Below, piece after piece: positions 21,061 through 38,662 of a stretch of DNA of 64,000 nucleotides. The position numbers were made by a program, and so were the translations under genes. Within the stretch, counting starts at the first letter, position 1. Every line of letters begins with the position of its first letter. The stretch lies in sequence record PP777464.1; one strand, written 5' to 3'. The notes beneath the pieces are model-generated. The model made no database searches. It was not told where the DNA came from and saw nothing but the letters and a program-made list of their open reading frames with translations.

Positions 21061-21090
21061 TGGATTGATATTATTTTTAATGGAGTCCCT

Positions 21091-23258: not shown

Positions 23259-23457
23259 GTATCAGTATCATTGGAGGTTACAAGCTATAAGAAGGAAAGT
23301 TGTTAGTATTTCTTTAGACAAGTCTATTGCACAAGAGGACAAATGTGTTATAATAGCTGAAATGAAGTTGGGTGCATTCGTAGGAACAAACTATCAAAAC
23401 ATCTACACTGACGTATTGTTAAGTGCCTTACGTAACAAGGTGATATCAAAAGAATGA
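23242..23457 (+). CDS. paralog family A protein
   Basis: FVGTNYQN. Confidence 0.85.
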   Translation: MITLNEYQYHWRLQAIRRKVVSISLDKSIAQEDKCVIIAEMKLGAFVGTNYQNIYTDVLLSALRNKVISKE

Positions 23458-23672
23458 GAAAATTACAAGGCTTTGAATACATCAGACTCCTGAAAACATG
23501 TGCCAACAGAAGAGTAAAGATTCAATCTGATAAGAGCATCCCTGCCAACCTAAAACATGCATTGATAGCTGAACTCTATGCAGGGGCACTCATAGGGACA
23601 AACTATCAACAAATGTATATAGACATGTGGGTTGATGCATTAGTCAAGGAGATCCAAAGTAAATGCAAATGA
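23454..23672 (+). CDS. paralog family A protein
   Basis: LIGTNYQQ. Confidence 0.85.
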   Translation: MRKLQGFEYIRLLKTCANRRVKIQSDKSIPANLKHALIAELYAGALIGTNYQQMYIDMWVDALVKEIQSKCK

Positions 23673-23911
23673 TTAATTTAAGTAAATCTGAATATAAAGA
23701 ACGCCAAGCAAAAATCTTACCTAAACTTAATGAAATCCATTTCGGTGAAGTAAACAAACACGAAAATAAGATGATTATGAAGCGTGAGACAAAGCTATGT
23801 GCATTCTTAGGAACTAACTATCAGGAGTATTATGTAGAGGAATATATAATTACACTTAAGAAATACATTGGAAGTAAACTAAGTAAACGTGCGAGAAATG
23901 CAAATGATTAA
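23663..23911 (+). CDS. paralog family A protein
   Basis: FLGTNYQE. Confidence 0.85.
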   Translation: MQMINLSKSEYKERQAKILPKLNEIHFGEVNKHENKMIMKRETKLCAFLGTNYQEYYVEEYIITLKKYIGSKLSKRARNAND

Positions 23912-24116
23912 TTTAAGTAAAGATGAATATTATGAACGTCTTGCAAAAACTTATCCAGCACGTAACGCCGTTTATAATAGTAACATTATTGAACGCTCAA
24001 AGAAGTTGATTGTAGTAAATGAGATTAAGATGCTTTCAGTCTTAGGAACAAACTATCAAGAGAATGCTGTACTGTTGTTAATTGATGCCCTCAAGAGAGA
24101 GATACAAAGTAAATGA
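23889..24116 (+). CDS. paralog family A protein
   Basis: VLGTNYQE. Confidence 0.85.
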   Translation: MREMQMINLSKDEYYERLAKTYPARNAVYNSNIIERSKKLIVVNEIKMLSVLGTNYQENAVLLLIDALKREIQSK

Positions 24117-24361
24117 TTAATTTATCTTTCCATGAATATCAAAAACGTTTAAATGCATCAAGGGATATAAGGATTCAAATCTTCAATAACAAAAGATTGA
24201 AACCTGACACCAGAAGAATCAAAATAATAGAAGCAGAGTTATGCAACTTCCTGGGGACGAACCATCAGGAAGGTAAGATAAAAAACTATCTTAGAGAACT
24301 CATGATTTGTATCGAAAATAAATGTGAGGTTGATGAACATGCAAATGATCAATTTAAGTAA
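24113..24361 (+). CDS. paralog family A protein
   Basis: FLGTNHQE. Confidence 0.85.
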   Translation: MINLSFHEYQKRLNASRDIRIQIFNNKRLKPDTRRIKIIEAELCNFLGTNHQEGKIKNYLRELMICIENKCEVDEHANDQFK

Positions 24362-24602
24362 AGATGAATATACCGAGCGTATGACAAAAATTACGCACAA
24401 ACGTAATACAATCTATCACAACCCAGAAATTCAACACAGTAAGAAAATGATTATGATGCGTGAGTTAAAGATGGGTGTATTCTTAGGAACAAACTATCAA
24501 GAGCCAGAAGTAAATCGATTAATTGCTGAGTTACTATTGGAAATCAAAGGTAAGCTGTACTTTTATCAAATGACCCAACCACTGAGGTGTACTGATCGAT
24601 GA
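24324..24602 (+). CDS. paralog family A protein
   Basis: FLGTNYQE. Confidence 0.85.
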   Translation: MRLMNMQMINLSKDEYTERMTKITHKRNTIYHNPEIQHSKKMIMMRELKMGVFLGTNYQEPEVNRLIAELLLEIKGKLYFYQMTQPLRCTDR

Positions 24603-24850
24603 ATGCGATGAATATTGTGAATAACATCAGATTAGCAGAAAGATTTGATAGAATTGGGGAAGCACTGAGAAGATACGATAAAGAATATGGTCATTTGAGC
24701 TTTTCTATAGAAAAGAGATATGAACTTGAAGCAGAGTTTAAAATGCAGAGTCTCTTAGGCACACAGTATCAAAACCAATATATTCAAACTTGGATTGATT
24801 GTTTAATCCAGACAATTTATGTAAGAAACATTAAATGCAAAATGAAATGA
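24599..24850 (+). CDS. paralog family A protein
   Basis: LLGTQYQN. Confidence 0.85.
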   Translation: MNAMNIVNNIRLAERFDRIGEALRRYDKEYGHLSFSIEKRYELEAEFKMQSLLGTQYQNQYIQTWIDCLIQTIYVRNIKCKMK

Positions 24851-25071
24851 TATACTTAACACATGATGAGTTAACAGAAAGACTAGATAAATCCAAAAGA
24901 CTTACAAATCAACTTCCTCACAACCCAAACCAAACCCCAGCGGAAAGGAGTGCAGAAGTTTTATTCCAAAGATTACCATACCTTCTTGGAACTGATAGGC
25001 AAGAGTATCATGTTGAACGTATAATTAAATATCTCAAAATTACTATTATGGAAAAAGTAAATGCAAAATGA
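24835..25071 (+). CDS. paralog family A protein
   Basis: LLGTDRQE; recent duplicate of next gene. Confidence 0.85.
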   Translation: MQNEMIYLTHDELTERLDKSKRLTNQLPHNPNQTPAERSAEVLFQRLPYLLGTDRQEYHVERIIKYLKITIMEKVNAK

Positions 25072-25318
25072 AATGAAATACTTAACAGACGATGAGTTAA
25101 AAGAACGATTAATTAAATCCAGAAAACTTACAAATCAACTTCCAAACGACACAAACAAGTCACATGCCGAAAGGAGTGCAGAAGTTTTATACATTCAACT
25201 CCTGTACTTTCTTGGAACTGACAGACAAGAGTATTACATTGAAAGTATGCTTCGATATCTTAAATTCTCTATAAAGGAAAAGGTACATGCTCAAGAATTT
25301 AAAAATCCTAACAGTTAA
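25061..25318 (+). CDS. paralog family A protein
   Basis: FLGTDRQE. Confidence 0.85.
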   Translation: MQNEMKYLTDDELKERLIKSRKLTNQLPNDTNKSHAERSAEVLYIQLLYFLGTDRQEYYIESMLRYLKFSIKEKVHAQEFKNPNS

Positions 25319-25529
25319 TGAATATCATAAGATTGTAATGAAAACTAATAGTGCAATATCTAAAAAATCAAACCCAAAGTACATACTGGAACACACATTC
25401 GAAGAACGTCAATTAGCTTTAGTTGAAGCAAAACTTCTTGCACTCCTAGGAACAAACTATCAGGAAGAATACATCAGAAAACTAATATACCTTTTAACTA
25501 AACACATCAGGAAAAGAAAAAAAGCATGA
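25287..25529 (+). CDS. paralog family A protein
   Basis: LLGTNYQE. Confidence 0.85.
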   Translation: MLKNLKILTVNEYHKIVMKTNSAISKKSNPKYILEHTFEERQLALVEAKLLALLGTNYQEEYIRKLIYLLTKHIRKRKKA

Positions 25530-25756
25530 AGCACTTGACAGATGATGAACATGGGCTTATAGTAATGGATGTAATCAACATCGAATACAAAAAGTTGATA
25601 CGCTACCGTTGTTATGAAGATAAGCAACTCGTTCTAGCAGAACAGAAGTTGTTTCGACTCTTAAACACAAACTTCCAAGCACAATACGAAGAATCGTATT
25701 TGTACCTACTGTCGAGGAAAGCAAAAAGAGATTATGAAAATTTTAAGCCACAGTGA
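25526..25756 (+). CDS. paralog family A protein
   Basis: LLNTNFQA. Confidence 0.85.
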   Translation: MKHLTDDEHGLIVMDVINIEYKKLIRYRCYEDKQLVLAEQKLFRLLNTNFQAQYEESYLYLLSRKAKRDYENFKPQ

Positions 25757-25949
25757 ACAAACAGAATTGTTAATCTTTAATACAAGTAAATTCTTAAACA
25801 TAACATTGTCTGATATAGATGAGGATGAAAAAGAGTTACTTAGAGCAGATTTAAGAGTTCTTTTATATGTTGGAACTAACTTCCAAGAGCAATTCGTTGA
25901 GGACTACATCGATGAACTTAAAGAATCTGTACTGAGAACATGCAAATGA
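25734..25949 (+). CDS. paralog family A protein
   Basis: YVGTNFQE. Confidence 0.85.
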   Translation: MKILSHSEQTELLIFNTSKFLNITLSDIDEDEKELLRADLRVLLYVGTNFQEQFVEDYIDELKESVLRTCK

Positions 25950-26182
25950 AAATCCTTTCACCAAGTGAATACCACGAACTATTAAGTAGTTTAATTCTAA
26001 AATTGTATATAGCAAAGACCACAGATTTACCTGATGAAGAAAAAAATATTCTAATGAGTGAAATCTATGTTAATTCTACCCTAGGGACTAACTATCAAGA
26101 ATGTAATATTAATGATTACATCAAAGAACTAAAAAGGTTTATCCAATGCAAATGCGAATCATTACCGACGAAGAATACCTAA
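25940..26182 (+). CDS. paralog family A protein
   Basis: TLGTNYQE. Confidence 0.85.
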   Translation: MQMKILSPSEYHELLSSLILKLYIAKTTDLPDEEKNILMSEIYVNSTLGTNYQECNINDYIKELKRFIQCKCESLPTKNT

Positions 26183-26397
26183 CAATCATAAATGGACTGT
26201 TTTCGAAGTTATTTGCCATTAACACATCAAAACTTCCAGATACTGATAAAATTATTAAGTTAAATGAAATCTACGTTCAAGCTACTCTAGGAACAAACTA
26301 TCAAGAAGCCAATGTGTATAATTACATTAATACACTCAAAAGGGTAATAAAATTAAAATGCACAGACAGCACAAACAGCCAATACACAAACCCCTAG
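26146..26397 (+). CDS. paralog family A protein
   Basis: TLGTNYQE. Confidence 0.85.
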   Translation: MQMRIITDEEYLTIINGLFSKLFAINTSKLPDTDKIIKLNEIYVQATLGTNYQEANVYNYINTLKRVIKLKCTDSTNSQYTNP

Positions 26398-26597
26398 GAA
26401 CAGCAGAATACATTGAACTAATGGCTGCAAACTTCTCATCCTTTAAGAAACTGATGCAAGAATCAAATAATGATTTAGAATATCATATCAAAAGTTCAGA
26501 TTTAAGATTACTACTCACTCTAGGAACAGACAGTCAGTACAAATTCGTACAGGAGCATATTAGAGCACTTTTAAATGGCATCAGGGATAAACTATGA
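26358..26597 (+). CDS. paralog family A protein
   Basis: TLGTDSQY. Confidence 0.8.
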   Translation: MHRQHKQPIHKPLGTAEYIELMAANFSSFKKLMQESNNDLEYHIKSSDLRLLLTLGTDSQYKFVQEHIRALLNGIRDKL

Positions 26598-26809
26598 AGG
26601 AAATATCAAATCAAGAGTACTTGGCACTATTCAGGAAGAATAATCACAAATATATGGCACTTGATTCAAGAACTGATATAAGTGAACTTCAGAAAAATCT
26701 TTTGCGTTCAGAGATGATAGTACTGACACTCTTAGGAACACAGCATCAAGAGAGAACTGTTAATTCACACATAGAGATTCTTATGCAGATAGTACAGGAA
26801 AAGATATGA
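26594..26809 (+). CDS. paralog family A protein
   Basis: LLGTQHQE. Confidence 0.85.
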   Translation: MKEISNQEYLALFRKNNHKYMALDSRTDISELQKNLLRSEMIVLTLLGTQHQERTVNSHIEILMQIVQEKI

Positions 26810-27028: not shown

Positions 27029-27280
27029 ATGAAAGTACTGACAGAACTAGAAATGTATCATAGATTTAATAAGTACTATCATTTACTTAAGCCTATACAG
27101 AGAATTAAATGTCCATTTGAAGAGAAACAGGTTTTAATCTATGAGCACAAGTTCTTTGTATCATTAGGTACAGATCAACAAGAGTACTATTTGACGTTGT
27201 ACTTGATTACATTAATAGATTTCATTCACTATAAAACCACACAATCTAAACAAGCTAATAAAGAGAAATATGAAAACTAA
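27029..27280 (+). CDS. paralog family A protein
   Basis: SLGTDQQE; start moved to MKVLT. Confidence 0.8.
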   Translation: MKVLTELEMYHRFNKYYHLLKPIQRIKCPFEEKQVLIYEHKFFVSLGTDQQEYYLTLYLITLIDFIHYKTTQSKQANKEKYEN

Positions 27281-27608
27281 TATAAAACTCAAGGTATATA
27301 AATCATTTGCAAGTACATACATCAAATGCCATACATGTAACTCTGTAATGGACTACAAAGGTAAGCCATTTGCACTTACTTATGATAATACAAGAGGTTT
27401 TTATATATCTTTTGCTGATTACAAATATAACATATACGAACACATTGACATTGAAGATTTAAGTACTTTATCTGAAGAGGAATACTTTCAAGAATCATTA
27501 GTATGGGATTTGGAGTTTCCTATGCCATTAGTACATAAGATGATAGTACTAATAAAAGAAACTAAACCTGTACCTAATGGTTATGAAGAACACATTATTG
27601 AGTATTAA
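27270..27608 (+). CDS. paralog family B (EEExFQxSLV) protein
   Basis: LSEEEYFQESLVWD. Confidence 0.85.
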   Translation: MKTNIKLKVYKSFASTYIKCHTCNSVMDYKGKPFALTYDNTRGFYISFADYKYNIYEHIDIEDLSTLSEEEYFQESLVWDLEFPMPLVHKMIVLIKETKPVPNGYEEHIIEY

Positions 27609-27622
27609 TATATAAGGTAACT

Positions 27623-27964
27623 ATGAAAACTAATATACAACTCAATGTATACAGTTCAGAAGAACATACATATATCAAATGCAGTCTATGTAAAGATGTA
27701 ATGGACTACAAGGGTAAGCCATTCACAATTACTTATGATTCTTATGTTAATGATTTATATATATCATTTCTTAATTACGAAAAGAAAATATACAAGCACG
27801 TTGATATTAAAGATTTAAGTACTTTATCTGAAGAAGAATACTTTCAAGAATCATTAGTATGGGATTTAGAATTTCCTATGCCATTAGTACATAAAATGGT
27901 AGTCCTAATGAAAGAAACTAAACCGGAGTTTAATGGTTATGAAGAACACATCGTTGAGTACTAA
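27623..27964 (+). CDS. paralog family B protein
   Basis: LSEEEYFQESLVWD; recent duplicate of 27270. Confidence 0.85.
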   Translation: MKTNIQLNVYSSEEHTYIKCSLCKDVMDYKGKPFTITYDSYVNDLYISFLNYEKKIYKHVDIKDLSTLSEEEYFQESLVWDLEFPMPLVHKMVVLMKETKPEFNGYEEHIVEY

Positions 27965-27967
27965 ACA

Positions 27968-28192
27968 ATGAAAATATTATCATACAAAGATTACCGCAAG
28001 CTTCGCGGTATTTTGCGACCAGAAATTCAAAGAATTAATTCTCTTCCTATATCTAATGCAGAATGTTCAGTACTGAAAGATGAGTTAATATTAAAACACA
28101 CAGTAGGAACTAACTATCAAGCTGATAGTGTTCGATATCTAATTTGGGGATTAATATGCATAGTAAAGGAAAAACAAGCTCAAGTACTGTGA
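27968..28192 (+). CDS. paralog family A protein (dispersed)
   Basis: TVGTNYQA. Confidence 0.8.
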   Translation: MKILSYKDYRKLRGILRPEIQRINSLPISNAECSVLKDELILKHTVGTNYQADSVRYLIWGLICIVKEKQAQVL

Positions 28193-28518
28193 CAATCGAA
28201 GTGAATTCTATTAATGCTGGTAATGCAGTAGATAAGTTCTTTATTGCTCAAGGGTACAGGAAAGATATTCATCAATATTGTTCAGTATATGGGGAGTACA
28301 ATAGTACTGAAGATATAATTTATTGGTCAACACATCAAGATTATCTAACTAAAATTGGCATTCCAGATGTTAGTACTTTATCTGAAGAAGAATACTTTCA
28401 GTACAGCTTAGTACATGATTTACCTATACCTTTAGGGTTAATCAAGGGTATACAGGAAGAGGTTCATAAGCTTAAATCCATGAGTAAAGGTACTTTCATT
28501 AGAACAGTGCAATACTAG
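28144..28518 (+). CDS. paralog family B protein
   Basis: LSEEEYFQYSLVHD; true start may be GTG ~28189. Confidence 0.8.
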   Translation: MGINMHSKGKTSSSTVTIEVNSINAGNAVDKFFIAQGYRKDIHQYCSVYGEYNSTEDIIYWSTHQDYLTKIGIPDVSTLSEEEYFQYSLVHDLPIPLGLIKGIQEEVHKLKSMSKGTFIRTVQY

Positions 28519-28519
28519 C

Positions 28520-28548
28520 TTGACAGTACTTTTCATTACTGATATAGT
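28520..28548 (+). promoter_or_regulatory. sigma70-type promoter
   Basis: TTGACA-17-TATAGT with AGTACT next to -35. Confidence 0.65.
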
Positions 28549-28577
28549 ACCTGTACGTTAATCATGGGGTAAAAATT

Positions 28578-28823
28578 ATGTTGAATTTTTTAAATTTCCT
28601 TATCGTCTTGTGTATTGTTCTTGGGATTGCACCATTTGTATTGTATTTCATGGATTCAGATGAAATGCAGAAGATGAATTGTACAAGGACAGGACAGAGT
28701 AGAGTAGAGACGATTCTTATGCCTGTTACGGTTATTGTTAACAACATGCCCATTACCAACATGGTCCCTACCCTAACGACAACGTACCAGTACTCTTGTA
28801 CAGACGGAGAGAGGTGGAGATAA
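28578..28823 (+). CDS. small membrane-anchored protein
   Basis: N-terminal hydrophobic helix; two C-terminal-domain Cys. Confidence 0.75.
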   Translation: MLNFLNFLIVLCIVLGIAPFVLYFMDSDEMQKMNCTRTGQSRVETILMPVTVIVNNMPITNMVPTLTTTYQYSCTDGERWR

Positions 28824-29146
28824 TGCGTAAGTTCAATTGTATTGTACGTAAGAATTCATGTTACATTGTAGTAGCTGATTTTAATACAGGTTCTGGATTG
28901 AAGATATTTGAGTACAGAAAATGCAATAATTCTTTTCATTGGAAATTGGGTGCAAGAAAAGCAAAAACAATTTCAGTACCGAATTTATGTTCTATCTCTG
29001 AAGAAGAAGAGTTTCAGTACTTGTTAGTACATGATGATTCTTTAGGATTTACATTAGAAGATATGAAGAAAGTACAACAGCAGATGATTGCACATTGTCA
29101 TCTTCCAAAGAATTTTGTTCAACACGTATGTGAATTCCACATATAA
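28823..29146 (+). CDS. paralog family B protein
   Basis: ISEEEEFQYLLVHD. Confidence 0.8.
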   Translation: MRKFNCIVRKNSCYIVVADFNTGSGLKIFEYRKCNNSFHWKLGARKAKTISVPNLCSISEEEEFQYLLVHDDSLGFTLEDMKKVQQQMIAHCHLPKNFVQHVCEFHI

Positions 29147-29155
29147 GAGAAGAAT

Positions 29156-29467
29156 ATGAAATTTAATATAGCAAAAACATCGAGTATATGTATTTTTGGT
29201 TATGCAGAAGAGTTAGGTGATATTGACATTCTTTTGTACAAAAAGGATGGTGTTATGCATTTCAAGTACCAGGATGAAGAGGCAGACAATTATCTTTTAC
29301 CTAATTTAGTACACATGCAGGAAGAGGAATTATTCCAGTACAGCTTAATATACGACATTGATATTTGCACGATGCCAGTATTAATTAGTATTCAAAAAGT
29401 GATGCTAGATATGTATGATAAGCTAATACAAGGTATGTCAGGGAGGATCATTGAAATTGACATATAA
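29156..29467 (+). CDS. paralog family B protein
   Basis: MQEEELFQYSLIYD. Confidence 0.8.
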   Translation: MKFNIAKTSSICIFGYAEELGDIDILLYKKDGVMHFKYQDEEADNYLLPNLVHMQEEELFQYSLIYDIDICTMPVLISIQKVMLDMYDKLIQGMSGRIIEIDI

Positions 29468-29495
29468 GAATATACCTAAAGGAGATGCAATATAA

Positions 29496-29747
29496 ATGTA
29501 CAAAAAAATAAACCGTTATTTGTATGCATCAAAGTACAGGGATTTTTGTTTACAAGGGGGAGATGACGATTTTGCTCTGAGGTTATCGGAATTTAATATG
29601 TTATTTTATCTTGGTACAAAAGAACAAGAAGATACAGTACAGAAATTTCTCAATCATCTTGTACAAAAAATTAATATGCAAATTTTGATGCTTAAGTTAC
29701 AGAATGAGATAAATGAATATGAATCCAGAAATAGTTCAGGATCTTAA
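29496..29747 (+). CDS. paralog family A protein (dispersed)
   Basis: YLGTKEQE. Confidence 0.75.
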   Translation: MYKKINRYLYASKYRDFCLQGGDDDFALRLSEFNMLFYLGTKEQEDTVQKFLNHLVQKINMQILMLKLQNEINEYESRNSSGS

Positions 29748-30123
29748 AAAAGTAATATTTCTTTTGAATACAAGAAGCTCTTTATATAAGGAGTTCAAGG
29801 ATATTAAAACATCGTGTAATATAGATTTTTTTGAAACCATACATGCGGAGTTTCGTGATTTAATTGCAGATGCATTGTTTGAATTTTCCGAGAAATATCA
29901 AGGTACAGTCTTCGGTGTTAAGAATGTTCTTCGTCCAAGTACAGGTACAAGGAAGATTGAGTTATCACATTTTACAATTGGTAACAACGATTTATTCAGT
30001 TATAACCCCAGTACATCTTTATATTTTATTCCTGTTTCAGACAAAAATCATCCTATTCATTACGGATGGATTATATCTTATACAATAAATGGAACGGAGT
30101 ATCCTATTAAATGGCACGATTAG
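29713..30123 (+). CDS. hypothetical protein
   Basis: 136 aa ORF in operon. Confidence 0.75.
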   Translation: MNMNPEIVQDLKKVIFLLNTRSSLYKEFKDIKTSCNIDFFETIHAEFRDLIADALFEFSEKYQGTVFGVKNVLRPSTGTRKIELSHFTIGNNDLFSYNPSTSLYFIPVSDKNHPIHYGWIISYTINGTEYPIKWHD

Positions 30124-30262
30124 GGTGTGAAGATTATAATATGAATATATTATTAAGAAATATTAATGCAGATTATTGTGTATGGGTTAAGAATAGAGAT
30201 ATGATGTATTATGATTTTTATTTAGATTGTGCCATTAAGCGTTTTTTAAGAGAAGAACATTA

Positions 30263-30445
30263 ATGAAAACCGTTAATACAAAAGCAATAAATGATTTAAA
30301 TGATTCTTTATTAGTAAGTATCAAGATGTATTACAATATACATTTAAAGGGTGGTATAGATAATTACAATTATTATCTTTCATTAGTTACAATAGAACAT
30401 TTAAATTATATAGATCAGTTATTACATCCAAATCCACCAAATTAA
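30263..30445 (+). CDS. small hypothetical protein
   Basis: ORF in operon. Confidence 0.6.
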   Translation: MKTVNTKAINDLNDSLLVSIKMYYNIHLKGGIDNYNYYLSLVTIEHLNYIDQLLHPNPPN

Positions 30446-30456
30446 GGAATACCAAT

Positions 30457-31017
30457 ATGAATGATATTGAGTTATTGGTACATAAGATTTGCACAATATC
30501 GTTAGTGCTGGACAATGCGAATACAGTACAGAGTTCCCTTTTAAGAATTAATAAAGTTGGGAGTAGTTTATATTTGGAAGTAAAAGCTGGTTTTGCAGGA
30601 CAGTACAATGATAAAATCAAAGAAGAAGTTAAGGGAAATGAAGATGCTTTCATTGAGGTTTGTGCAACAGTTGGTTCAAATCCAATTTCAGTATCACCTT
30701 TAATGCGAAATGAAAATTCAGAATTTGATTCCAGTTTTGAAGGTTATTTGTGGTACAATTATGGTGATGATTATTTTATATATCAGAATTCCAAAACGGA
30801 TTATAGTGAAGAAGGTATAAAATTCATTGATCCTTACAATGAAGCAGAAGTATTTCAGACATCCCTAATATACAATACAAATCAAATGAAGTATCTTATG
30901 TTGTTTAGTACAATGCATTTGAATCCATTGAAAGATAATTTAAAATTTTTCATTCGTTTAGAATTAGTTGATATTGCTTATGATCTTTTAATGCAAGGAT
31001 ATAGTTATGAAGTATAA
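30457..31017 (+). CDS. paralog family B protein
   Basis: NEAEVFQTSLIYN; pair with 31094. Confidence 0.8.
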   Translation: MNDIELLVHKICTISLVLDNANTVQSSLLRINKVGSSLYLEVKAGFAGQYNDKIKEEVKGNEDAFIEVCATVGSNPISVSPLMRNENSEFDSSFEGYLWYNYGDDYFIYQNSKTDYSEEGIKFIDPYNEAEVFQTSLIYNTNQMKYLMLFSTMHLNPLKDNLKFFIRLELVDIAYDLLMQGYSYEV

Positions 31018-31087
31018 AATGCTTTATACAAAAGATATGATTTATGTTGAATTAGAAGACAATGACGATGTATCCATCAATAGGTAA
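31007..31087 (+). pseudogene. truncated remnant of a 31590-type family B gene
   Basis: MKYKMLYTKDMIYVELEDNDDVSINR* matches the N-termini of 31590 and 31922 but stops after 26 codons. Confidence 0.7.
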
Positions 31088-31093
31088 TAATAT

Positions 31094-31600
31094 ATGAATG
31101 AGATAGAATTATTAGCACACAAGATTAGTACAGTAATGCTTATGCTCAAGAATAATCATTCTATGCATAAGTACATTTTTATAGGTGATTTACGCATAGA
31201 AGATAGATATGATAAATTATCGTTTATGTTTAAAGATGAAAGTAATGCAAAAGTTTGTTTTGCAGCATTTGCCCAAGGCAATCCAGAACAAGCATCTCCT
31301 GTTATATATGAAAATAGTGAAGGGTATTTGTGGGTCAACACAAACGATTATTTCTTTTATGTTTTGAAACAAGATGATGAAGTAGAAGCACGAATTGATT
31401 TAATTGATATTAGTACAGATTGTAGTGCTGAATTATTTCAGAAATCGTTATTATACAGTCCTCGTCAAATACATTATCTAAAGTTATTCAGTTCATTGTA
31501 CGCGAATCCTTTAATTAAGGGTTTTAAATTTTATATCAAAATTCCGCACCTTTCAAACGTTTATGATTTATTAATGCAAGGATATAGTTATGAAGTATAA
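31094..31600 (+). CDS. paralog family B protein
   Basis: CSAELFQKSLLYS; same C-terminus YDLLMQGYSYEV as 30457. Confidence 0.8.
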   Translation: MNEIELLAHKISTVMLMLKNNHSMHKYIFIGDLRIEDRYDKLSFMFKDESNAKVCFAAFAQGNPEQASPVIYENSEGYLWVNTNDYFFYVLKQDDEVEARIDLIDISTDCSAELFQKSLLYSPRQIHYLKLFSSLYANPLIKGFKFYIKIPHLSNVYDLLMQGYSYEV

Positions 31601-31901
31601 AATGCTGTATACATTAACATTAATATATGTAGAATTAGAATCCGATTCAGATGCATGGAATTTGGTTAAAGAGGTCGATACCAATCAATGGTACATGGCA
31701 AATTTAGACGCACATGTTGTTACGGATTATTTTATAGATTTTAATACATTATCTGAAGAAGAATTTTTCCAAATGCAATTGGTGGTTGACATGTACGGAC
31801 ATGACATGGTAACATTAAGAAATATACAGAAAGTCGTTAATGAATTCCAAAGCAAGAAAGATTATGAAGTAGGAGCGTATTATGACATCGACGTACAGTG
31901 A
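31590..31901 (+). CDS. paralog family B protein
   Basis: LSEEEFFQMQLVVD. Confidence 0.8.
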   Translation: MKYKMLYTLTLIYVELESDSDAWNLVKEVDTNQWYMANLDAHVVTDYFIDFNTLSEEEFFQMQLVVDMYGHDMVTLRNIQKVVNEFQSKKDYEVGAYYDIDVQ

Positions 31902-31921
31902 AAGCAATGAGTACAATAGTT

Positions 31922-32248
31922 ATGAAGTATAAAATGCTTTATACATTATCAGGGATATATGTAGAATTAGAACCCGATTATCCAGATGGATGGAATTTTA
32001 TTAAACGCTCCGAAAGAAATACATGGCACATGGCACATTTGGATAATGACGTAATATTAGACAATTTTGTGGATTTTAATACATTATCAGAAGAAGAATT
32101 CTTCCAAATGCAATGTGTGCTTGACACAAAAGGATTTGATGTGCTATTATTAAGGAATATACAGAAAGCTGTTAACGAATTAATATCCAATGACGAGTTA
32201 GGCAAAGTGAGGCTGTTCCATGATCTCGAAGTACCGTACCAGCAATGA
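31922..32248 (+). CDS. paralog family B protein
   Basis: LSEEEFFQMQCVLD. Confidence 0.8.
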   Translation: MKYKMLYTLSGIYVELEPDYPDGWNFIKRSERNTWHMAHLDNDVILDNFVDFNTLSEEEFFQMQCVLDTKGFDVLLLRNIQKAVNELISNDELGKVRLFHDLEVPYQQ

Positions 32249-32789
32249 AATTCAGTACACCTACGCTAATGCAATCCTAATGGGACAAAAGTTAGCTTGT
32301 ATTGTTGCAGCCTTATATAATGTACAGAAAGCAGCACATAATAAAAAACCATATACAAGAATCATTAACGCATTCATGGGGTTTAAACCATCTGATTTTG
32401 ATTCACATATTGCGTGCACAAGTTATTTTGACAAACGATTCAATACACCTGATACCCCAAATGCCCGTAGTGTTATTAGTCTTTTACAGTTTAATCCAAC
32501 ACCAGTTATATCAAAGAATGATTTGGATTACACATGGTACAATTCAAATCAAGATTCATTTTATTCTAATGATCAATCGATTGAATATAATAAAATTAAA
32601 TCAGAGGAAGCATTTTTTCAGGAATCATTATTTACACATGAACGTTCTTTGTTTTATAGTGTTATGTTGAGTACAGTATACAATAGTCCATTACACAAGA
32701 ATAACAAAATTAATTTCAGTTTTTGTGCTTATGCGATTGATGGTGTTTATGAGTGCTTAATGGAGGTATTGAGTTATGAAGCTGAATAA
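32220..32789 (+). CDS. paralog family B protein
   Basis: SEEAFFQESLFTH. Confidence 0.8.
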   Translation: MISKYRTSNEIQYTYANAILMGQKLACIVAALYNVQKAAHNKKPYTRIINAFMGFKPSDFDSHIACTSYFDKRFNTPDTPNARSVISLLQFNPTPVISKNDLDYTWYNSNQDSFYSNDQSIEYNKIKSEEAFFQESLFTHERSLFYSVMLSTVYNSPLHKNNKINFSFCAYAIDGVYECLMEVLSYEAE

Positions 32790-33117
32790 TACATTTGATA
32801 TTAATAAGTTAAGAGAATGGTTTAATAATATTGAAATTGACGCCATTCCTTATCATACATATGAACAAAGCGATTTACAAAGTATTGATATCAGAGAGTT
32901 GTACAAATATTATCAGAGTGCATTAGAGATGCATAAGTTATTTTTGAGTACAAATTTCATCCTAAATTACAATTTTGAGGAATTTAATAATTATAATTTA
33001 GTACAGAAATATGTAGTAGCAAAGTACATGTACAATCAAGGTATAAAAGGTTGCATCGAATTCAATACCGTTCTTATTTTAGTTGAGGTAATTTTATGCA
33101 CCGCATGTCTGATTTAG
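32776..33117 (+). CDS. hypothetical protein
   Basis: ORF in operon. Confidence 0.7.
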   Translation: MKLNNTFDINKLREWFNNIEIDAIPYHTYEQSDLQSIDIRELYKYYQSALEMHKLFLSTNFILNYNFEEFNNYNLVQKYVVAKYMYNQGIKGCIEFNTVLILVEVILCTACLI

Positions 33118-33593
33118 AGTTCAGTTTAGATGCAGCCTTTAAATTTGTTCACAAAATAGAAACAATATATCGTACATTATGTGCAATAACATCAGTATCA
33201 AAAGAGTTTGATGTTGGTGAAAGGTATCAGGTGTGGAATAATTCATTTTATAATAAAGAACATTCTGCGACGGCATTTTATATTTTAGCATTTAATCCCA
33301 GCAATTGTTACCCAGAGAAGCATGAACGTTATCCAAATGACGACATGTGGTTTGAGTACAAAGAAGATGCTGATATGTCGTCAATTGTAGTTCCTGATGA
33401 TTTTAATGCACAAGATTTAACAGAAGAGTGGTGGTTCCAGCAGAATTTAGTACATGATGATATTGATTTATTTTTCTATATTGCATTTAAAATGCTTTAT
33501 CACAACAATATAGTTAAAGAAAGTTTATCGTTTTCATGTCTATATATTGATGATTTGTACAATGAAATTCAAATAAACATGCCTGTATCGTAA
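33096..33593 (+). CDS. paralog family B protein
   Basis: LTEEWWFQQNLVHD. Confidence 0.8.
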   Translation: MHRMSDLEFSLDAAFKFVHKIETIYRTLCAITSVSKEFDVGERYQVWNNSFYNKEHSATAFYILAFNPSNCYPEKHERYPNDDMWFEYKEDADMSSIVVPDDFNAQDLTEEWWFQQNLVHDDIDLFFYIAFKMLYHNNIVKESLSFSCLYIDDLYNEIQINMPVS

Positions 33594-33609
33594 GATATGG
33601 GCTTTTTTT
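33581..33609 (+). terminator. intrinsic terminator
   Basis: GCCTGTATC-gtaa-GATATGGGC + T7. Confidence 0.7.
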
Positions 33610-33611
33610 GT

Positions 33612-33640
33612 TTGACACAAGTACAAATGCATGGTACAAT
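33612..33640 (+). promoter_or_regulatory. sigma70-type promoter
   Basis: TTGACA-17-TACAAT; spacer carries AGTACA instead of AGTACT. Confidence 0.7.
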
Positions 33641-33667
33641 GTGTAATCATTTTTTAAGGAGATACCT

Positions 33668-34216
33668 ATGGAAAATTTTAAAATACCAGATGATTTCAAT
33701 TCAGTACAAGAGATGGTACACAAGGTTCATTATATTTTTCATGAATTAATTATTGCCAATTCATCCGGTATGCAAATTGAGTTAAAGGATATTGATAGAG
33801 AAGAAGTATTTCTGGCTTCCCCAAATTCAATCATTCCTTTTTATGGACAAGATCGTTTATGGTTCATGAGAGATACCCCAATTGACAAATACAAAATACA
33901 AACAAAATCAGAGTTTTATTCTATTTTTGAATATCTTAATATTACATTACAAACACAAGATATAAATGCAATAAGTGCCATGAGTGCTGAGGAATATTTT
34001 CAGTACAGTACATTGCATAGTCCAGAAGAAATCTTTGTTGTTATGCTCGTTGCAAAATTGAGTACAGTTGATTTTGGGACGTACCCAAATAAATCATTCA
34101 AGATTATTATTCCTGCATTCGTCGATCTTTATGATTTCATTGTGCACAAGAAAGAAAGTACAGTGTACGATATGTATCGTTCAAATATCAGTATGATTAC
34201 AGGGGAATTAAAATGA
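33668..34216 (+). CDS. paralog family B protein
   Basis: MSAEEYFQYSTLHS. Confidence 0.8.
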   Translation: MENFKIPDDFNSVQEMVHKVHYIFHELIIANSSGMQIELKDIDREEVFLASPNSIIPFYGQDRLWFMRDTPIDKYKIQTKSEFYSIFEYLNITLQTQDINAISAMSAEEYFQYSTLHSPEEIFVVMLVAKLSTVDFGTYPNKSFKIIIPAFVDLYDFIVHKKESTVYDMYRSNISMITGELK

Positions 34217-34821
34217 ACATAGATCAATTAATGAAGTACAGTACAAGTGTAATTCCAGTGCTAAGTAAAGCATTAGATGCATTCAATGCTAAGTACCCTG
34301 AAGGTTCAGAGTTAAATATTCCTTTTACCACAGAAGGGATTGTTGATACGTACATTGTAAACATCAGTAGTACAGGTATTGTTTTGAAGCAAAAGTACGG
34401 CGAAAGTGAATATTATGGATTGAAGCTGGATAATATTTCAGGAGAGAAGACACCTTATGAGTTTTGGGTTCCGAATAACATTGAGTCATGGAAAACAAAT
34501 ATTAATAAGAGAGACGAAAGAAATTTACCTCTTGTACAAAATAATGAAAAAAGAATTGACGTATTTTATTATTACAGTACAGCCCAGTTTCCAGAAGAGA
34601 TTTATTTAAATTCAGAGGTTCATGAAGATATTGAATCATTTTTCTTTCAGTTATCATTGGTACAGGATATCATGCCTGTGCAAATGTTCAGGGATGAAAT
34701 AAATTTAGCGAAAGAGATTTCGGATATGTTACCTGAATTTAGTGTTCTTTATGGTAGTAGAGCTTTACCTGAAAATGTTTACAAAGAATTTATTTCCATT
34801 GTTAAAGGGTTGAATATATAA
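34213..34821 (+). CDS. paralog family B protein
   Basis: IESFFFQLSLVQD. Confidence 0.8.
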   Translation: MNIDQLMKYSTSVIPVLSKALDAFNAKYPEGSELNIPFTTEGIVDTYIVNISSTGIVLKQKYGESEYYGLKLDNISGEKTPYEFWVPNNIESWKTNINKRDERNLPLVQNNEKRIDVFYYYSTAQFPEEIYLNSEVHEDIESFFFQLSLVQDIMPVQMFRDEINLAKEISDMLPEFSVLYGSRALPENVYKEFISIVKGLNI

Positions 34822-34822
34822 T

Positions 34823-35017
34823 ATGACCGCCTATGATATCAAACAAAGGCATACGAAGTTTGATTTGTTCACATACCAATTCCACAATGATATAGTGAAT
34901 TTTAACATCAATGCGTCCTTGCATCCTACATCACAAGATGATTTTGACAACAGAGTGCTTAACATCGTGGTGCTTTTGTGTTATAATCATTTCAGTGAAT
35001 ATTTTAACACAAGATAA
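34823..35017 (+). CDS. small hypothetical protein
   Basis: ORF in operon. Confidence 0.6.
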   Translation: MTAYDIKQRHTKFDLFTYQFHNDIVNFNINASLHPTSQDDFDNRVLNIVVLLCYNHFSEYFNTR

Positions 35018-35030
35018 GGTTGAGGCACAC

Positions 35031-35549
35031 ATGTATCAGGCCAAGTACAATACATCATATGCATTTGCACACAACATTTTGAAGATCATCAAAGCGTTAG
35101 AGGGTGGATTGCTTAGTCATAAGTACACCAGAGTAGGTGACAATTGGTTCAGAAATGATGATGAGTTCAGAAGTCATAAGATTGTTTACAGCAATAATTA
35201 CAGTGCCAATTACCTTCAGGATGTTGCTATGTGCTTCGAATACGTGTTACAGTTCAGGGGTTCCATCAGTCCTGATCTAAGAGAACACATGTACATTCGA
35301 TACCTACCAATGCTTAAGGATGAGAAAACAATATTCAATTCAGTACACCACAGAGTACGAGAGAGATCATTCAGGGATATTTTAGAAGATGAAGCTGCCT
35401 ATTTTCAGCAATCATTGATTGATGCTCCTGATGTGTTACAGATGCAGAATTTGTATAATGTATTAGATGCGAACATCGATACGGATATCTTTTTTTCCTT
35501 AAGTGATTATGAAACATTTTTGGAAGATTTAAAGGAAATAGGATTATGA
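35031..35549 (+). CDS. paralog family B protein
   Basis: EDEAAYFQQSLID; start after GAGG RBS. Confidence 0.8.
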   Translation: MYQAKYNTSYAFAHNILKIIKALEGGLLSHKYTRVGDNWFRNDDEFRSHKIVYSNNYSANYLQDVAMCFEYVLQFRGSISPDLREHMYIRYLPMLKDEKTIFNSVHHRVRERSFRDILEDEAAYFQQSLIDAPDVLQMQNLYNVLDANIDTDIFFSLSDYETFLEDLKEIGL

Positions 35550-35890
35550 GTAGATTTTCAGTTTATATAGTAAACGTCAGTAAAGATGGTAGTTTAATTG
35601 AATTTGATGTAGTTGATAACAATGATAATTCATATGGTATTAAGGTACAGGACAATGATGTACAGTTCAGTACAAGGACAAATTTTGAGAATCCAGTCCA
35701 AGTTCCGAATTTCATAGAAGATGAAGCTGCACGATTCCAACACGAAACGGCCTTTGATAATTTAGCGATGCATATTATTATGCAACAAAGTTTAGTTCAA
35801 TTGCTTCAGGTATTCAGACAAAATATATATGTACATGAAGTGTCGATTAATGGCATTCAAAGTTCCGTTTTGTTCGGTACAAATATGTAA
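35546..35890 (+). CDS. paralog family B protein
   Basis: EDEAARFQHETAFD. Confidence 0.75.
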   Translation: MSRFSVYIVNVSKDGSLIEFDVVDNNDNSYGIKVQDNDVQFSTRTNFENPVQVPNFIEDEAARFQHETAFDNLAMHIIMQQSLVQLLQVFRQNIYVHEVSINGIQSSVLFGTNM

Positions 35891-35900
35891 GGAAAGTACA

Positions 35901-36455
35901 ATGAGTTCAATGAGTTTATTAGATACATTAGAAAAAGACAGAAGTGCCATTAAGAGATTAAAAAATCTTGTCCAGAGCATTGCGAACAACGCTGAGAAGT
36001 TCAGTGACAATCTTAGTATAGGTGATATAACCAGTACAGGAATAAAATCCCTGAAGTCAGATTTATTAATTCATAAGGAAGATAAATTATTATTTGTATT
36101 GAGTTCAGATTTAATGGTTGCAAGTAATGGTTTCAATTCGATATCAACACAAGATGGTAGCACAGGATTATATCTATCACAGGGTGTCCAGACGAACGAA
36201 CAAAAGTGTTTTAGTTCAGGAGTACAGAATCCCTTTAAGTTCAGTACAGAACAAGCTACAGAGCTTTTAGATGCTTCAGAAGAGATGTTATTTCAGTACA
36301 AAACGGTTCATACAGATTTTGAATTACGATGCATGTACGCTGTTAAGCATTATGTTCAGGAGTTCGAGAATTTAAGTTATCTTTTAGTTCGAACGAATAC
36401 AAAGAACATTGGTGCATTAGAAGATTACATTTCAAAAGTTGTTAAAGGGTGCTAA
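35901..36455 (+). CDS. paralog family B protein
   Basis: SEEMLFQYKTVHT; start after AAGGA RBS. Confidence 0.8.
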   Translation: MSSMSLLDTLEKDRSAIKRLKNLVQSIANNAEKFSDNLSIGDITSTGIKSLKSDLLIHKEDKLLFVLSSDLMVASNGFNSISTQDGSTGLYLSQGVQTNEQKCFSSGVQNPFKFSTEQATELLDASEEMLFQYKTVHTDFELRCMYAVKHYVQEFENLSYLLVRTNTKNIGALEDYISKVVKGC

Positions 36456-36618
36456 AGGGTGCTGATGAAAGAGTTATTTGAAGAACAGTTCGATACATAT
36501 GTGGATAATATTCTTTATTCTAGTCGTGCTAGTCAACGAGGAAATCGTGCTTACAACATAGATTACCTATTAACGGTGCTGAGTTCACAGTACACCTACG
36601 CTGTGCAGAGGACATATT

Positions 36619-36822
36619 ATGGATAATTTTAGAGATGTTGCAAAGGAGAAGTTCAAGTGCAGTTTAGATTACGGTTTAAATGATTTTCTTACATGCACAA
36701 TGTACAGGAATGATGATTATGAGCAATCCGTAATTTCGTTGCACAGATATTTCGAAATAATTTACGCAAGATATCTTAGAAGGTTAGATGGAATAGGGGA
36801 TTGGAGTTATGATTACGTTTGA
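36619..36822 (+). CDS. small hypothetical protein
   Basis: GAGG RBS. Confidence 0.65.
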   Translation: MDNFRDVAKEKFKCSLDYGLNDFLTCTMYRNDDYEQSVISLHRYFEIIYARYLRRLDGIGDWSYDYV

Positions 36823-37024
36823 AGAGCCGGAAGTGGTATATTGCTATAGTGTGAAAGGTTTTGAATACATGATGGATTCGATTTTGAAGGATACATATTT
36901 GGTTCAGATTGCAGTTGCAGATGATGCAGTACAACGAGTATTGAATATATACGAGAAGACGAGTCGAAGGCTTTGTGCGATGAAAAGGATTGAAGAAATC
37001 AAGCTTTCTAGGCTGAATAAATAG
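36809..37024 (+). CDS. small hypothetical protein
   Basis: GGAG RBS. Confidence 0.65.
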   Translation: MITFEEPEVVYCYSVKGFEYMMDSILKDTYLVQIAVADDAVQRVLNIYEKTSRRLCAMKRIEEIKLSRLNK

Positions 37025-37085
37025 AGACGTTTCGTTTTCACAGGCCGCAGGGGGGGGTCAAAAAAATTTTCGCTGAAAAACATGT

Positions 37086-37135
37086 NNNNNNNNNNNNNNN
37101 NNNNNNNNNNNNNNNNNNNNNNNNNNNNNNNNNNN
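37086..37135. other. assembly gap (50 N) inside a GC-rich imperfect inverted repeat
   Basis: N run; left flank gagacgttt..G-run..aaaaacatg mirrors right flank catgtttcc..ccccgccgc..aaacgttctc. Confidence 0.9.
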
Positions 37136-37220
37136 TCATGTTTCCTGAAACAAAAAATACCCCGCCGCAAACGTTCTCCTTATATTGGAGTTTACCTTAT
37201 TAATTACAGTAGAGATTATT

Positions 37221-37598
37221 ATGGAAATAAAATATAAAGAATTTTGTATAGGGACATGGATGTACACGGGTGAGTTGATTACGTGTTGTAATTTGTACAA
37301 AGGTGATTTAAACTACACAAGGGGCAAGGTTATAAAGTTCTGGAATTCACAATTTTATTTAATGGATCTTGGTACTGGATTTAGTTGTAAAGCAACCGAT
37401 ATGCTGGACTATACCTTAATGGATGATGCTGCACTATTTCAGGAGTCATTAGTATTTGACAAGAAGTACATCTGTACATTAGAAGAGATTGTTGAAATCC
37501 AGCGTAGAATTAAATGCATTCACAGGGAATGTATAGATAAATGGTGTAAAACTGGTGAAACTAATTTTAGTAATCATTTCAATCTAGGGGAAGAGTGA
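37221..37598 (+). CDS. paralog family B protein (CNLxKGD subfamily)
   Basis: CCNLYKGD; DDAALFQESLVFDKKY. Confidence 0.8.
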   Translation: MEIKYKEFCIGTWMYTGELITCCNLYKGDLNYTRGKVIKFWNSQFYLMDLGTGFSCKATDMLDYTLMDDAALFQESLVFDKKYICTLEEIVEIQRRIKCIHRECIDKWCKTGETNFSNHFNLGEE

Positions 37599-37954
37599 TG
37601 GAATTTGATTTTTTAATATCAGTACATTCTTTTAAGAACAGTTTTCAGTACTTTTGTAATTTAAACAAAGGTGATTTGATGCACAGTGCAAATGAGTATA
37701 TTCATTTTACGGATGGTAAATTCACATTCATTGATTACAATTCATTACAGTATCCACATCAGGATATGCCGGATTATACAGTAATGGATGCCGCTGAACT
37801 ATTTCAGGAGTCATTAGTATTTGATAAGAAGTACTTGTGTACATTTGAAGAAGTTATTGCAATACAAAATGAAATGAAAGAGTATGACTCTTTGAATAAA
37901 GGCAATGTCAGTATTAATCAAGAATACAAATTCAATATAGGAATACCAGAATGA
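37595..37954 (+). CDS. paralog family B protein (CNLxKGD subfamily)
   Basis: FCNLNKGD; DAAELFQESLVFDKKY. Confidence 0.85.
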   Translation: MMEFDFLISVHSFKNSFQYFCNLNKGDLMHSANEYIHFTDGKFTFIDYNSLQYPHQDMPDYTVMDAAELFQESLVFDKKYLCTFEEVIAIQNEMKEYDSLNKGNVSINQEYKFNIGIPE

Positions 37955-38316
37955 CATATGATTATTCAATGTACGTTTGTAAGTCCAGAACGGGGTGGGA
38001 TTTGTGCTGTAATCTTGTCAAGGGTGATTCGGAACATGAGTTGAGTTTATATATTCAGTACTCGGATTTGTGTTTTAATTTCATTGATGTATTACATGAT
38101 GACTTCGACTATAACTCTGAAAGTATTACAGATTATACAGTACTGGATGATGTTGAACTATTTCAAGCTTCTTTGGTGTTTGACAAGAATAAGTACTCAT
38201 GTACAATAGAAGATATGATTTTTATACAAAATGAAATGAAGAGATATGTTAAAGAAAACACCTTTGATACATCTACACCAACAACAAGTAATTATTATTT
38301 CAATACAGGTGAGTAA
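37951..38316 (+). CDS. paralog family B protein (CNLxKGD subfamily)
   Basis: CCNLVKGD; DDVELFQASLVFDK. Confidence 0.85.
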   Translation: MTYDYSMYVCKSRTGWDLCCNLVKGDSEHELSLYIQYSDLCFNFIDVLHDDFDYNSESITDYTVLDDVELFQASLVFDKNKYSCTIEDMIFIQNEMKRYVKENTFDTSTPTTSNYYFNTGE

Positions 38317-38317
38317 T

Positions 38318-38662
38318 ATGGAATATGATTTTTCTATGTTTATACCTAAGATTAGTACTTCACTGGAAGTGTATTGCAATCTTAACAAAGGTGATTATGA
38401 ACACAAAATGGATCAGTACATTAAATTTAATGGTTCTTACTTTAGCTTCATTGATTATCAGGCCAAAGGAACAGTTGTAGAAAATATGAAAGACTATACA
38501 ACTGTACAGGGTGAGGCTGAAATATTTCAAGAGTCATTAATATTTGACAAGAAGTACTTGTGTACACTAGAGGAAGTTATTGAACTCCAACAGAAGATGA
38601 AAGAATATAGAAGAATCTGTATAGAGACTGATTCCAAAGATAGGTATCGTTTTAAGCTATGA
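38318..38662 (+). CDS. paralog family B protein (CNLxKGD subfamily)
   Basis: YCNLNKGD; GEAEIFQESLIFDKKY. Confidence 0.85.
   Translation: MEYDFSMFIPKISTSLEVYCNLNKGDYEHKMDQYIKFNGSYFSFIDYQAKGTVVENMKDYTTVQGEAEIFQESLIFDKKYLCTLEEVIELQQKMKEYRRICIETDSKDRYRFKL

Follow-up and report, generated by a model that had tools for sequence, protein, structure and literature searches.

A gene block of Escherichia jumbo phage fEgEco12 held free of the triplet ACT on its sense strand, in a genome enriched in AGTACT

What keeps an 8.3-kb block of a jumbo phage genome free of a hexamer that is over-represented almost everywhere else in that genome? The block lies in a window of 64,000 nt that corresponds to bases 1–64000 of Escherichia phage fEgEco12 (PP777464.1; 100% identity, identical coordinates), a jumbo myovirus of the genus Asteriusvirus with a genome of 374,733 bp and direct terminal repeats of 20,993 bp (PMC13070987). 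Every gene of the window is carried by the + strand, and the published description of the phage contains no motif analysis (PMC13070987). A preliminary description of the window had noted that the palindrome AGTACT is very frequent in coding and non-coding DNA but gives way to AGTACA between 29022 and 37371, and had proposed either a segment from a lineage with a different preference or a functional domain excluded from AGTACT binding. The counts behind this switch hold, but the switch itself is a by-product: the word that the block avoids is the triplet ACT, on the + strand only.

Between 29,019 and 37,312, ACT does not occur once on the + (sense) strand in any context, against about 110–160 occurrences expected. 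When the masked letters are counted out, the ACT-free runs are strictly 29,022–37,085 and 37,136–37,311:

29022–37085, + strand: main part of the ACT-free block, comprising 20 annotated genes (g091–g110) with the intergenic DNA among them, plus the 3′-terminal 125 nt of g090
37086–37135, no strand: masked N letters in intergenic DNA at the right edge of the block
37136–37311, + strand: continuation of the ACT-free run, with the first ACT at 37,312, 90 nt into g111

The resulting gap of 8,293 bp has a log10 expectation of −70, the runner-up ACT gap genome-wide being 475 bp, and is by far the most anomalous among all 2-, 3- and 4-mers in the whole fEgEco12 genome. The ACT-free strand is the sense strand for every block gene. 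AGT, the complement of ACT, occurs inside the block at normal-to-high density, and the avoidance is therefore strand-specific. AACT, CACT, GACT and TACT all count zero, hexamer counts show that each word ending in ACT is missing, and all remaining 4- and 5-mers do occur in the block.

The constraint is one on nucleotide sequence, as it holds in every reading frame and where adjacent codons meet. The Thr codon ACT accounts for 0 of 109 Thr codons in the block vs 28 of 75 in the flank; the NAC|T junction for 0 of 133 vs 44 of 110; and the NNA|CTN junction, where a Leu CTN codon follows a codon ending in A, for 0 of 65 vs 30 of 57. Synonymous codon shuffles within the block genes generate 49 ± 5 ACT (minimum 34), and back-translation of the block with flank codon usage generates 113 ± 9. 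These 8.2 kb have the property of a motif-free transcript, namely a word missing from the sense strand in all frames and at the junctions. Restriction-site avoidance, by contrast, acts on a duplex and usually palindromic site that is low on both strands; since ACT is not palindromic and AGT is abundant, it does not fit the block.

The preliminary count of about 80 GTAC sites between 29022 and 37371, none followed by T, proved close to exact. There are 83 such sites (72 GTACA, 5 GTACC, 6 GTACG and 0 GTACT), and the 72 GTACA divide by their 5′ base into 43 AGTACA, 14 TGTACA, 12 GGTACA and 3 CGTACA, so that the three words named there as the most common do make up most of the set. The reported G skew is also real (G 1556, C 1076), and the possibility that an exact count would find AGTACT at normal density in the block was checked and gave zero. 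Within block open reading frames (ORFs), AGTACA and GTACA are each in 2-fold excess over codon-shuffled controls (40 vs 16.7 ± 3.3 and 68 vs 33.1 ± 4.2 expected). AGTACA can be understood as the remnant of AGTACT, because a final T would make the forbidden ACT while AGTAC-type pressure persists.

These numbers bear directly on whether the block is a duplex-DNA domain that must escape AGTACT binding or modification. AGTACT falls from 3–6 per kb in the block flanks to zero in the block in all relatives, and in the terminal repeat it overlaps early promoters, as such a domain might lead one to expect. However, removal of a palindrome needs no strand bias, yet AGTACA outnumbers its complement TGTACT by 43 to 0, which excludes symmetric duplex recognition; moreover, every NACT word is missing, even far from GTAC, and GTAC cores and AGTACA stay enriched. 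We consider a duplex domain very improbable. Of the earlier proposal of a domain excluded from AGTACT binding, it stands that something is excluded, but the excluded word is ACT, on one strand, and AGTAC-type sites are still enriched.

The run lies between a promoter and an intergenic region with a possible hairpin, and it is divided internally:

28520–28548, + strand: sigma-70-like promoter (TTGACA, 17-base spacer, TATAGT, with TG) upstream of g089
33581–33602, + strand: terminator-like hairpin ahead of the next promoter
33612–33640, + strand: sigma-70-like promoter (TTGACA, 17-base spacer, TACAAT)

ACT is already sparse from the promoter at 28520 to 29,021. To judge from their sequences, the hairpin and promoter at 33581–33640 split the block into at least two transcription units; the AGTACA that had been reported for the promoter at 33612 is located in its 17-base spacer. 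At the right edge, the masked letters at 37086–37135 interrupt no reading frame, as the gene to their left ends at 37,024 and the next one begins at 37,221. Because the window keeps PP777464.1 coordinates on both sides, the gap represents 50 masked letters rather than a stretch of unknown length, and relatives are collinear in alignment to its left and right. The masked letters were neither read nor used, and fEgEco12 counts were made with the N letters in place. The arms flanking the gap, AAACATG and CATGTTT, are inverted repeats and may form a hairpin spanning it. A single further N, at window position 14394, belongs to a hairpin shortly before the gene that starts at 14427; the promoter region there otherwise duplicates the one at 14069–14111.

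The ACT-free block is common to ten named Asteriusvirus genomes (fEgEco12 included) and four metagenome contigs, always at the same position. The run measures 8,676 bp in EC.P1, 8,224 bp in BF17, 8,213 bp in ECO103 4-12-1, 7,620 bp in PBECO4, 7,511 bp in 121Q, 7,212 bp in Salmonella phage SD-15_S21 and 6,981 bp in A4, and is divided into 6,976 + 1,130 bp in TH47 and 4,447 + 720 bp in JNE01. The blocks of fEgEco12 and PBECO4 differ by 1,350 substitutions over 7,223 aligned positions, a divergence of 18%, with only 6% and 11% in the flanks. The same number and spectrum of substitutions placed at random yields 57 ± 7 new ACT, and a single ACT is seen across the two blocks; in this alignment, 136 AGT sites have been gained or lost. 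Expected gains of ACT amount to 33–57 per genome pair, yet the ACT-free state has been kept. The block proteins of JNE01 either match those of fEgEco12 at only 23–30% identity or lack a counterpart in that phage, and the JNE01 block is still ACT-free, with 31 AGTACA in 5 kb. Strong, continuing purifying selection thus acts against ACT on one strand. Klebsiella phage RaK2 showed no triplet-free run in 100 kb, the syntenic region included.

Could the block instead be a recently acquired foreign segment, or an assembly or base-calling artefact? Its G+C content of 0.29–0.34, vs 0.39 in the terminal repeat, and its distinct word usage would suit either. However, the same run stands at the same position in independently sequenced genomes from Finland, China, Korea, USA, Turkey, Ireland, Canada, South Africa and Poland and in metagenomes, its ACT-free state has been held against more than 1,300 substitutions, and published restriction digests agree with the fEgEco12 assembly (PMC13070987). 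A horizontally acquired island is recognized by patchy presence and inherited composition, but this block is in the same place in all Asteriusvirus checked. Since it is common to divergent genomes, JNE01 among them, both an artefact and a foreign segment are effectively ruled out, and we regard the two together as extremely improbable. The segment from a lineage with a different preference must therefore be given up as an explanation, and so must the chimeric contig or base-calling artefact that had been named as a possible objection, given that independently sequenced genomes carry the same run.

Outside the block, AGTACT is enriched throughout. The 353.7-kb unique sequence contains 977 sites vs about 117 expected (8–9 times), and the window contains 622 GTAC and 256 AGTACT vs about 21 AGTACT expected from composition. 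As first described, the word is frequent in coding and non-coding DNA alike, the window sites falling 62/43/71 in the three frames with 80 intergenic. Per 5-kb bin, 6–43 sites are found genome-wide, with the bin inside the block as the sole exception; density ranges from a low of ~2 per kb in structural genes up to 6.6 per kb in the terminal repeat. The parts of the window that matter here are:

1–20993, + strand: left direct terminal repeat, densest in AGTACT (138 sites, 76 intergenic)
20994–26616, + strand: array of about 25 genes of about 70 amino acids, with no GTAC or AGTACT enrichment and normal ACT density
37312–64000, + strand: right flank with arrays of genes of 110–280 amino acids and normal ACT (~20 per kb)
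61064–61588, + strand: Dam-type N6-adenine DNA methyltransferase (PF05869), 63% identical to its RaK2 counterpart

The excess survives the codon-shuffled controls that the preliminary description had recommended: ORFs of the terminal repeat contain 63 AGTACT vs 15.4 ± 3.2 expected, and those of the 37.4–64 kb region 99 vs 24.5 ± 4.6, a 4-fold excess. The right flank has 102 sites, distributed 25, 36 and 38 over the frames with 3 intergenic. In the repeat, intergenic AGTACT lies directly 5′ of the −35 (AGTACTTGCA...) or of the −10 (AGTACTGTATAAT) element of strong sigma-70-like early promoters. Flanks are symmetric: 45% of sites have C at −1, and 48% have G at +1. No regular spacing was found, the distribution being near Poisson (coefficient of variation 0.83–0.90). 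Between fEgEco12 and PBECO4, 74–79% of AGTACT sites are retained vs 47% for all hexamers. The enrichment extends to RaK2, a phage of another genus (119 vs 17 expected in one 50-kb stretch, 126 in another). A frame-independent excess with symmetric flanks and conservation above background is what sites for a duplex-DNA factor would display, and suggests that AGTACT serves as the target of a DNA-binding or modifying factor conserved in the phage clade. The positive use of the word that had been suspected is further strengthened by its occurrence in RaK2 and its decay in two lineages, described below. The Dam-type methyltransferase at 61064–61588 is a clade-conserved candidate for acting at GTAC/AGTACT, and the likewise clade-conserved C5 methyltransferase g455 is a second candidate enzyme. 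fEgEco12 DNA is cut normally by ten restriction enzymes, a set to which ScaI and RsaI do not belong (PMC13070987).

The second AGTACT-free stretch of the preliminary description (20,857–26,616 by our coordinates) is indeed poor in GTAC (15 vs 18.4 expected), with AGTACT at 0 vs 2.0 expected and only TGTACT in excess (9 vs 1.5 expected). Starting almost exactly at the end of the terminal repeat, it is simply a stretch without enrichment. A very-short-patch-like origin of AGTACT was considered and rejected, as neither deamination neighbour shows depletion (ratio 1.25 for AGTATT, 1.10 for AATACT). We also observed that neither GGTACC (KpnI/Acc65I) nor CGTACG (BsiWI) occurs in the 353.7 kb, where composition predicts about 30 of each, while their sister palindromes are enriched (AGTACT 977, TGTACA 210); by these counts, the absence fits classic restriction-site avoidance.

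Two Asteriusvirus genomes, ph0011 and UE-S1, have relaxed the constraint on the block, where they carry 21 and 18 ACT. These numbers match neutral gain along the two genomes' own lineages; each ACT is one step from the word found in the strict relatives, and six ph0011 sites restore AGTACT. The same two genomes have fewer AGTACT, 748 in ph0011 and 735 in UE-S1 vs 891–977 in four other whole genomes. Turnover is correspondingly lopsided, with 224 PBECO4-only vs 86 UE-S1-only and 270 TH47-only vs 121 ph0011-only sites; strict pairs give about 1:1. Polarised on A4, ph0011 and UE-S1 keep 282 and 276 of 489 AGTACT vs 339–346 in strict genomes, and 30 losses are common to the two. The commonest loss product in the relaxed genomes is AGTTCT, with 68–69 events vs 13–14 for its complement AGAACT. 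The bias may be due to coding constraint, since the substitution is silent in one frame (GTA to GTT) and replaces Tyr by Phe in another; alternatively, GTAC may be actively removed.

An ORF presence/absence matrix of six whole genomes, four strict and the two relaxed, returned three genes that are present in all four strict genomes and cleanly deleted from both ph0011 and UE-S1:

82148–82666: g210, 172 amino acids
297999–298418: g503, 139 amino acids
316657–316881: g547, 74 amino acids

Matches to g210 were found in 34 other Asteriusvirus records, and also in RaK2-like phages at 26% identity; ph0011 and UE-S1 are the only Asteriusvirus records from earlier searches missing among these matches. 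Matches to g503 occur in 61 records.

How might the two constraints be connected? We propose that the palindrome (C)AGTACT(G), held at 8–9 times expectation genome-wide, would be the target of a clade-conserved factor, while in an early cassette of about 20 genes at 29,022–37,311 the sense strand is kept without any copy of the half-site ACT. Messenger RNAs (mRNAs) of the cassette, being without ACU, would then escape an ACU-recognising nuclease or binder acting on other transcripts, and where the genome-wide AGTACT pressure meets the ban on ACT, the compromise would be AGTACA. Absolute avoidance in all frames, on the sense strand only and over whole transcription units, is the pattern expected from evasion of a single-strand-specific nuclease or binder. 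The agent would probably be linked to the phage and not supplied by the host alone: that AGTACT relaxed along with the ACT ban, and that the relaxed genomes lost the same genes, makes a phage-linked agent somewhat likelier than host defence. There is good support for selection that keeps ACT off the sense strand and is linked to the AGTACT system, and only moderate support for ACU-free messages escaping a phage-linked nuclease. What the sequences establish is the constraint, with its strand specificity and conservation, its relaxation together with AGTACT and the correlation with missing genes; that the agent acts on RNA, that it is a nuclease and that g210, g503 or g547 encodes it, we infer. 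Taken as a whole, evasion by ACU-free block mRNAs of a phage-linked ACU nuclease or binder tied to the AGTACT constraint has, in our estimate, slightly less than an even chance of being correct.

Several observations weigh against this proposal. g210, g503 and g547 match no Pfam family and are themselves not ACT-free. ph0011 and UE-S1 are 89% identical over much of the genome and have the deletions and the 30 AGTACT losses in common; with such common ancestry the gene-loss correlation counts as essentially a single evolutionary event. RaK2, although enriched in AGTACT and in possession of a g210 homologue, shows no ACT-free block in the syntenic region. Nor does the run begin exactly at a promoter, as 2–4 ACT occur in the 466 nt after the one at 28520. 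The described specificities of E. coli ribonucleases are ACA for MazF, U^AC for ChpB, GCU for MqsR and UUACU for Kid; the block is rich in ACA, UAC and GCU, the targets of the first three, and no nuclease of ACU specificity in E. coli is described in the literature searched. The RegB, PemK/MazF, ParE/RelE, PIN, HEPN, barnase/T1 and EndoU Pfam families have no match in the phage genome. A cognate endoribonuclease was thus found neither among the known E. coli specificities nor among these seven families, and a new family is possible. An agent acting at the RNA level alone fails to explain an enriched duplex palindrome with symmetric C/G flanks. Finally, the sole raw RNA run found, from a sample whose DNA carries the stretch, has 0 reads on it.

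By the same ACU-free logic, the agent could be a host defence, such as a toxin–antitoxin or abortive-infection ribonuclease of E. coli and Salmonella. The ph0011/UE-S1 lineage would then have moved to hosts without the agent, its gene losses and AGTACT decay being unrelated or secondary. Host mRNA interferases with 3-nt specificity do exist and act against phages; the block is limited to a genus infecting E. coli and Salmonella and is missing at the syntenic place in the Klebsiella phage RaK2; its evolution is fast (18% vs 6–11% in the flanks), as is common in counter-defence genes; and the seven families searched revealed no recognisable nuclease in the phage. However, the literature searched describes no E. 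coli toxin with ACU specificity, and a strain-variable defence predicts weak, patchy avoidance, not 0–2 ACT in ten named genomes. Moreover, the strict phages were isolated on K-12, O157, O103, avian pathogenic E. coli (APEC), LF82 and Salmonella hosts, and host defence leaves the AGTACT decay in the same two genomes unexplained. We judge a host agent unlikely.

The + strand could also be protected as DNA. Sense-strand DNA and mRNA are inseparable from sequence alone, and the non-template strand of a heavily transcribed early cassette, exposed in R-loops, in transcription bubbles or during entry, might escape a single-stranded DNA endonuclease or base-modifying enzyme with a 3-nt preference. 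T4 endonuclease IV, which cuts single-stranded DNA at TCA, and DarT toxins, which ADP-ribosylate it at 3–4-nt motifs, provide precedents. The intergenic DNA of the block, including the stretch from hairpin to promoter, comprises about 385 nt with 0 ACT vs about 8 expected, and a DNA-level factor is easier to square with the duplex AGTACT. On the other hand, nearly the whole genome is transcribed off the same strand and only these 8 kb are ACT-free; no reason is known why the block alone should be single-stranded, and no such enzyme was identified in the phage. A constraint on exposed single-stranded DNA seems to us, on balance, a rather improbable origin of the block.

An extended form of the phage-linked proposal would unite both constraints in one protein, with g210, g503 and g547 as candidates, that binds duplex AGTACT and cuts or blocks ACU-containing RNA, so that AGTACT density and the ACT-free block together form a genome-encoded timer. 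Early in infection, with one genome copy, the protein would be free and would destroy host and ordinary early messages, leaving the ACU-free cassette alone to be expressed. As replication proceeds, about a thousand AGTACT per copy would titrate the protein away, and middle and late messages would survive. We regard this version as a long shot.

The proteins of the block give few functional clues. None matches a Pfam family, all PHROGs matches are of unknown function, and an IMG/VR scan found no relatives of g104. Gene content varies, in that g097, g098/g099 and g100 come and go among relatives. Three of the genes form one family:

30457–32789, + strand: three phrog_19795 paralogues, g096 (30457–31017), g097 (31094–31600) and g100 (32220–32789)

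The structural model of g100 (predicted local distance difference test score, pLDDT, 73.6) has no fold match in the PDB (best Foldseek E-value 2.3, best VIA-align Z 3.2), and the g100 profile has no match there either. As the sole block gene missing from ph0011, and missing from UE-S1 as well, g100 was considered as the agent itself and rejected: A4 is without g100 yet ACT-free, and the metagenome contigs L020 and L021, without g100 and g097, have only 1 ACT. Genes bordering the block (g088, g090, g091, g111–g114 and others) belong to one paralogue family with a weak RING-variant-like match, located at window positions 28144–29467 and 37185–38662 and also at 27270–27964 and 43900–44587; the ACT-free run begins and stops within members of this family.

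Other sequence features of the genome were recorded along the way. Ten Chi sites (GCTGGTGG), all on the + strand, lie at window positions 590, 6681, 10868, 11378, 12328, 13577, 15925, 17823, 19402 and 19625, all within the terminal repeat and mostly intergenic, where 21 kb would be expected to contain about 0.07; across the unique genome the + strand carries 24 and the − strand 12, vs about 1.2 expected on each. The pattern suggests that the repeat ends are shielded from RecBCD. A tandem array of short GGATGGCT / AGACGGCT-like units at window positions 600–900, before the first gene and close to the left end of the genome, may be related to packaging or to the genome terminus. The second most anomalous k-mer gap genome-wide lies outside the window, at 146,530–151,812 of PP777464.1, where 5.3 kb of − strand long-tail-fibre genes are without AAAA on the + strand, and hence without TTTT on their sense strand (log10 expectation −25).

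In the literature searched, we found no report of a natural multi-gene stretch that selection keeps absolutely free of one triplet on one strand, nor of AGTACT enrichment. The block points to an agent with 3-nt specificity on single-stranded nucleic acid in E. coli jumbo-phage infection, and to about 20 early proteins that the phage must express while other messages are vulnerable, which makes these proteins natural candidates for host take-over or counter-defence. A natural comparison set exists in the relaxed phages ph0011 and UE-S1, the strict phages and the three candidate genes. The AGTACT enrichment in two genera is a separate lead, suggesting a DNA-binding or modifying factor of Rak2-like phages. 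Scanning for anomalously long k-mer-free runs is cheap and transferable, and could reveal hidden constraints in other phages.

Each of the two constraints has partial parallels in known systems. In E. coli, CCWGG is over-represented through Vsr very-short-patch repair, a possible non-adaptive route to an over-represented palindrome, and fEgEco12 has the C5 methyltransferase g455; unlike the products of that route, AGTACT has deamination neighbours that are not depleted, and its single sites are conserved above background. Phage T7 evades the Type III restriction enzyme EcoP15I by a strand-biased arrangement of sites, which likewise combines an asymmetric word, extreme strand bias in a phage genome and evasion, but there the site is a 6-bp duplex whose orientation matters genome-wide, whereas the block concerns a 3-nt word and only one strand of a single cassette. 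The T4 endoribonuclease RegB, which cuts at GGAG and exerts temporal control over early messages, illustrates a phage-encoded, sequence-specific ribonuclease whose sites are non-random in phage transcripts; its sites are enriched in their targets, fEgEco12 has no RegB homologue, and to our knowledge no immune operon has been described for RegB. Another parallel is the differential mRNA decay in which MqsR spares the GCU-free ghoT message, so that a natural transcript without the toxin's triplet is expressed while the nuclease is active. There the spared message is that of a single small host gene, whereas here it is a multi-gene phage cassette, in which GCT itself occurs 62 times. The closest precedents are the mild depletion of ACA in RNA coliphages (~0.83-fold; PMC12151602) and, in single-protein production, the transcripts engineered to be ACA-less, which survive MazF (PMC5408214). 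Like the messages of the block, these transcripts contain no copy of a 3-nt word in any frame, so that a message would survive a ribosome-independent, single-strand-specific endoribonuclease. The word avoided in the block is instead ACU, for which no nuclease is known, and the block itself is rich in ACA; its avoidance is natural and absolute, extending over 20 genes and 8 kb and throughout the genus.

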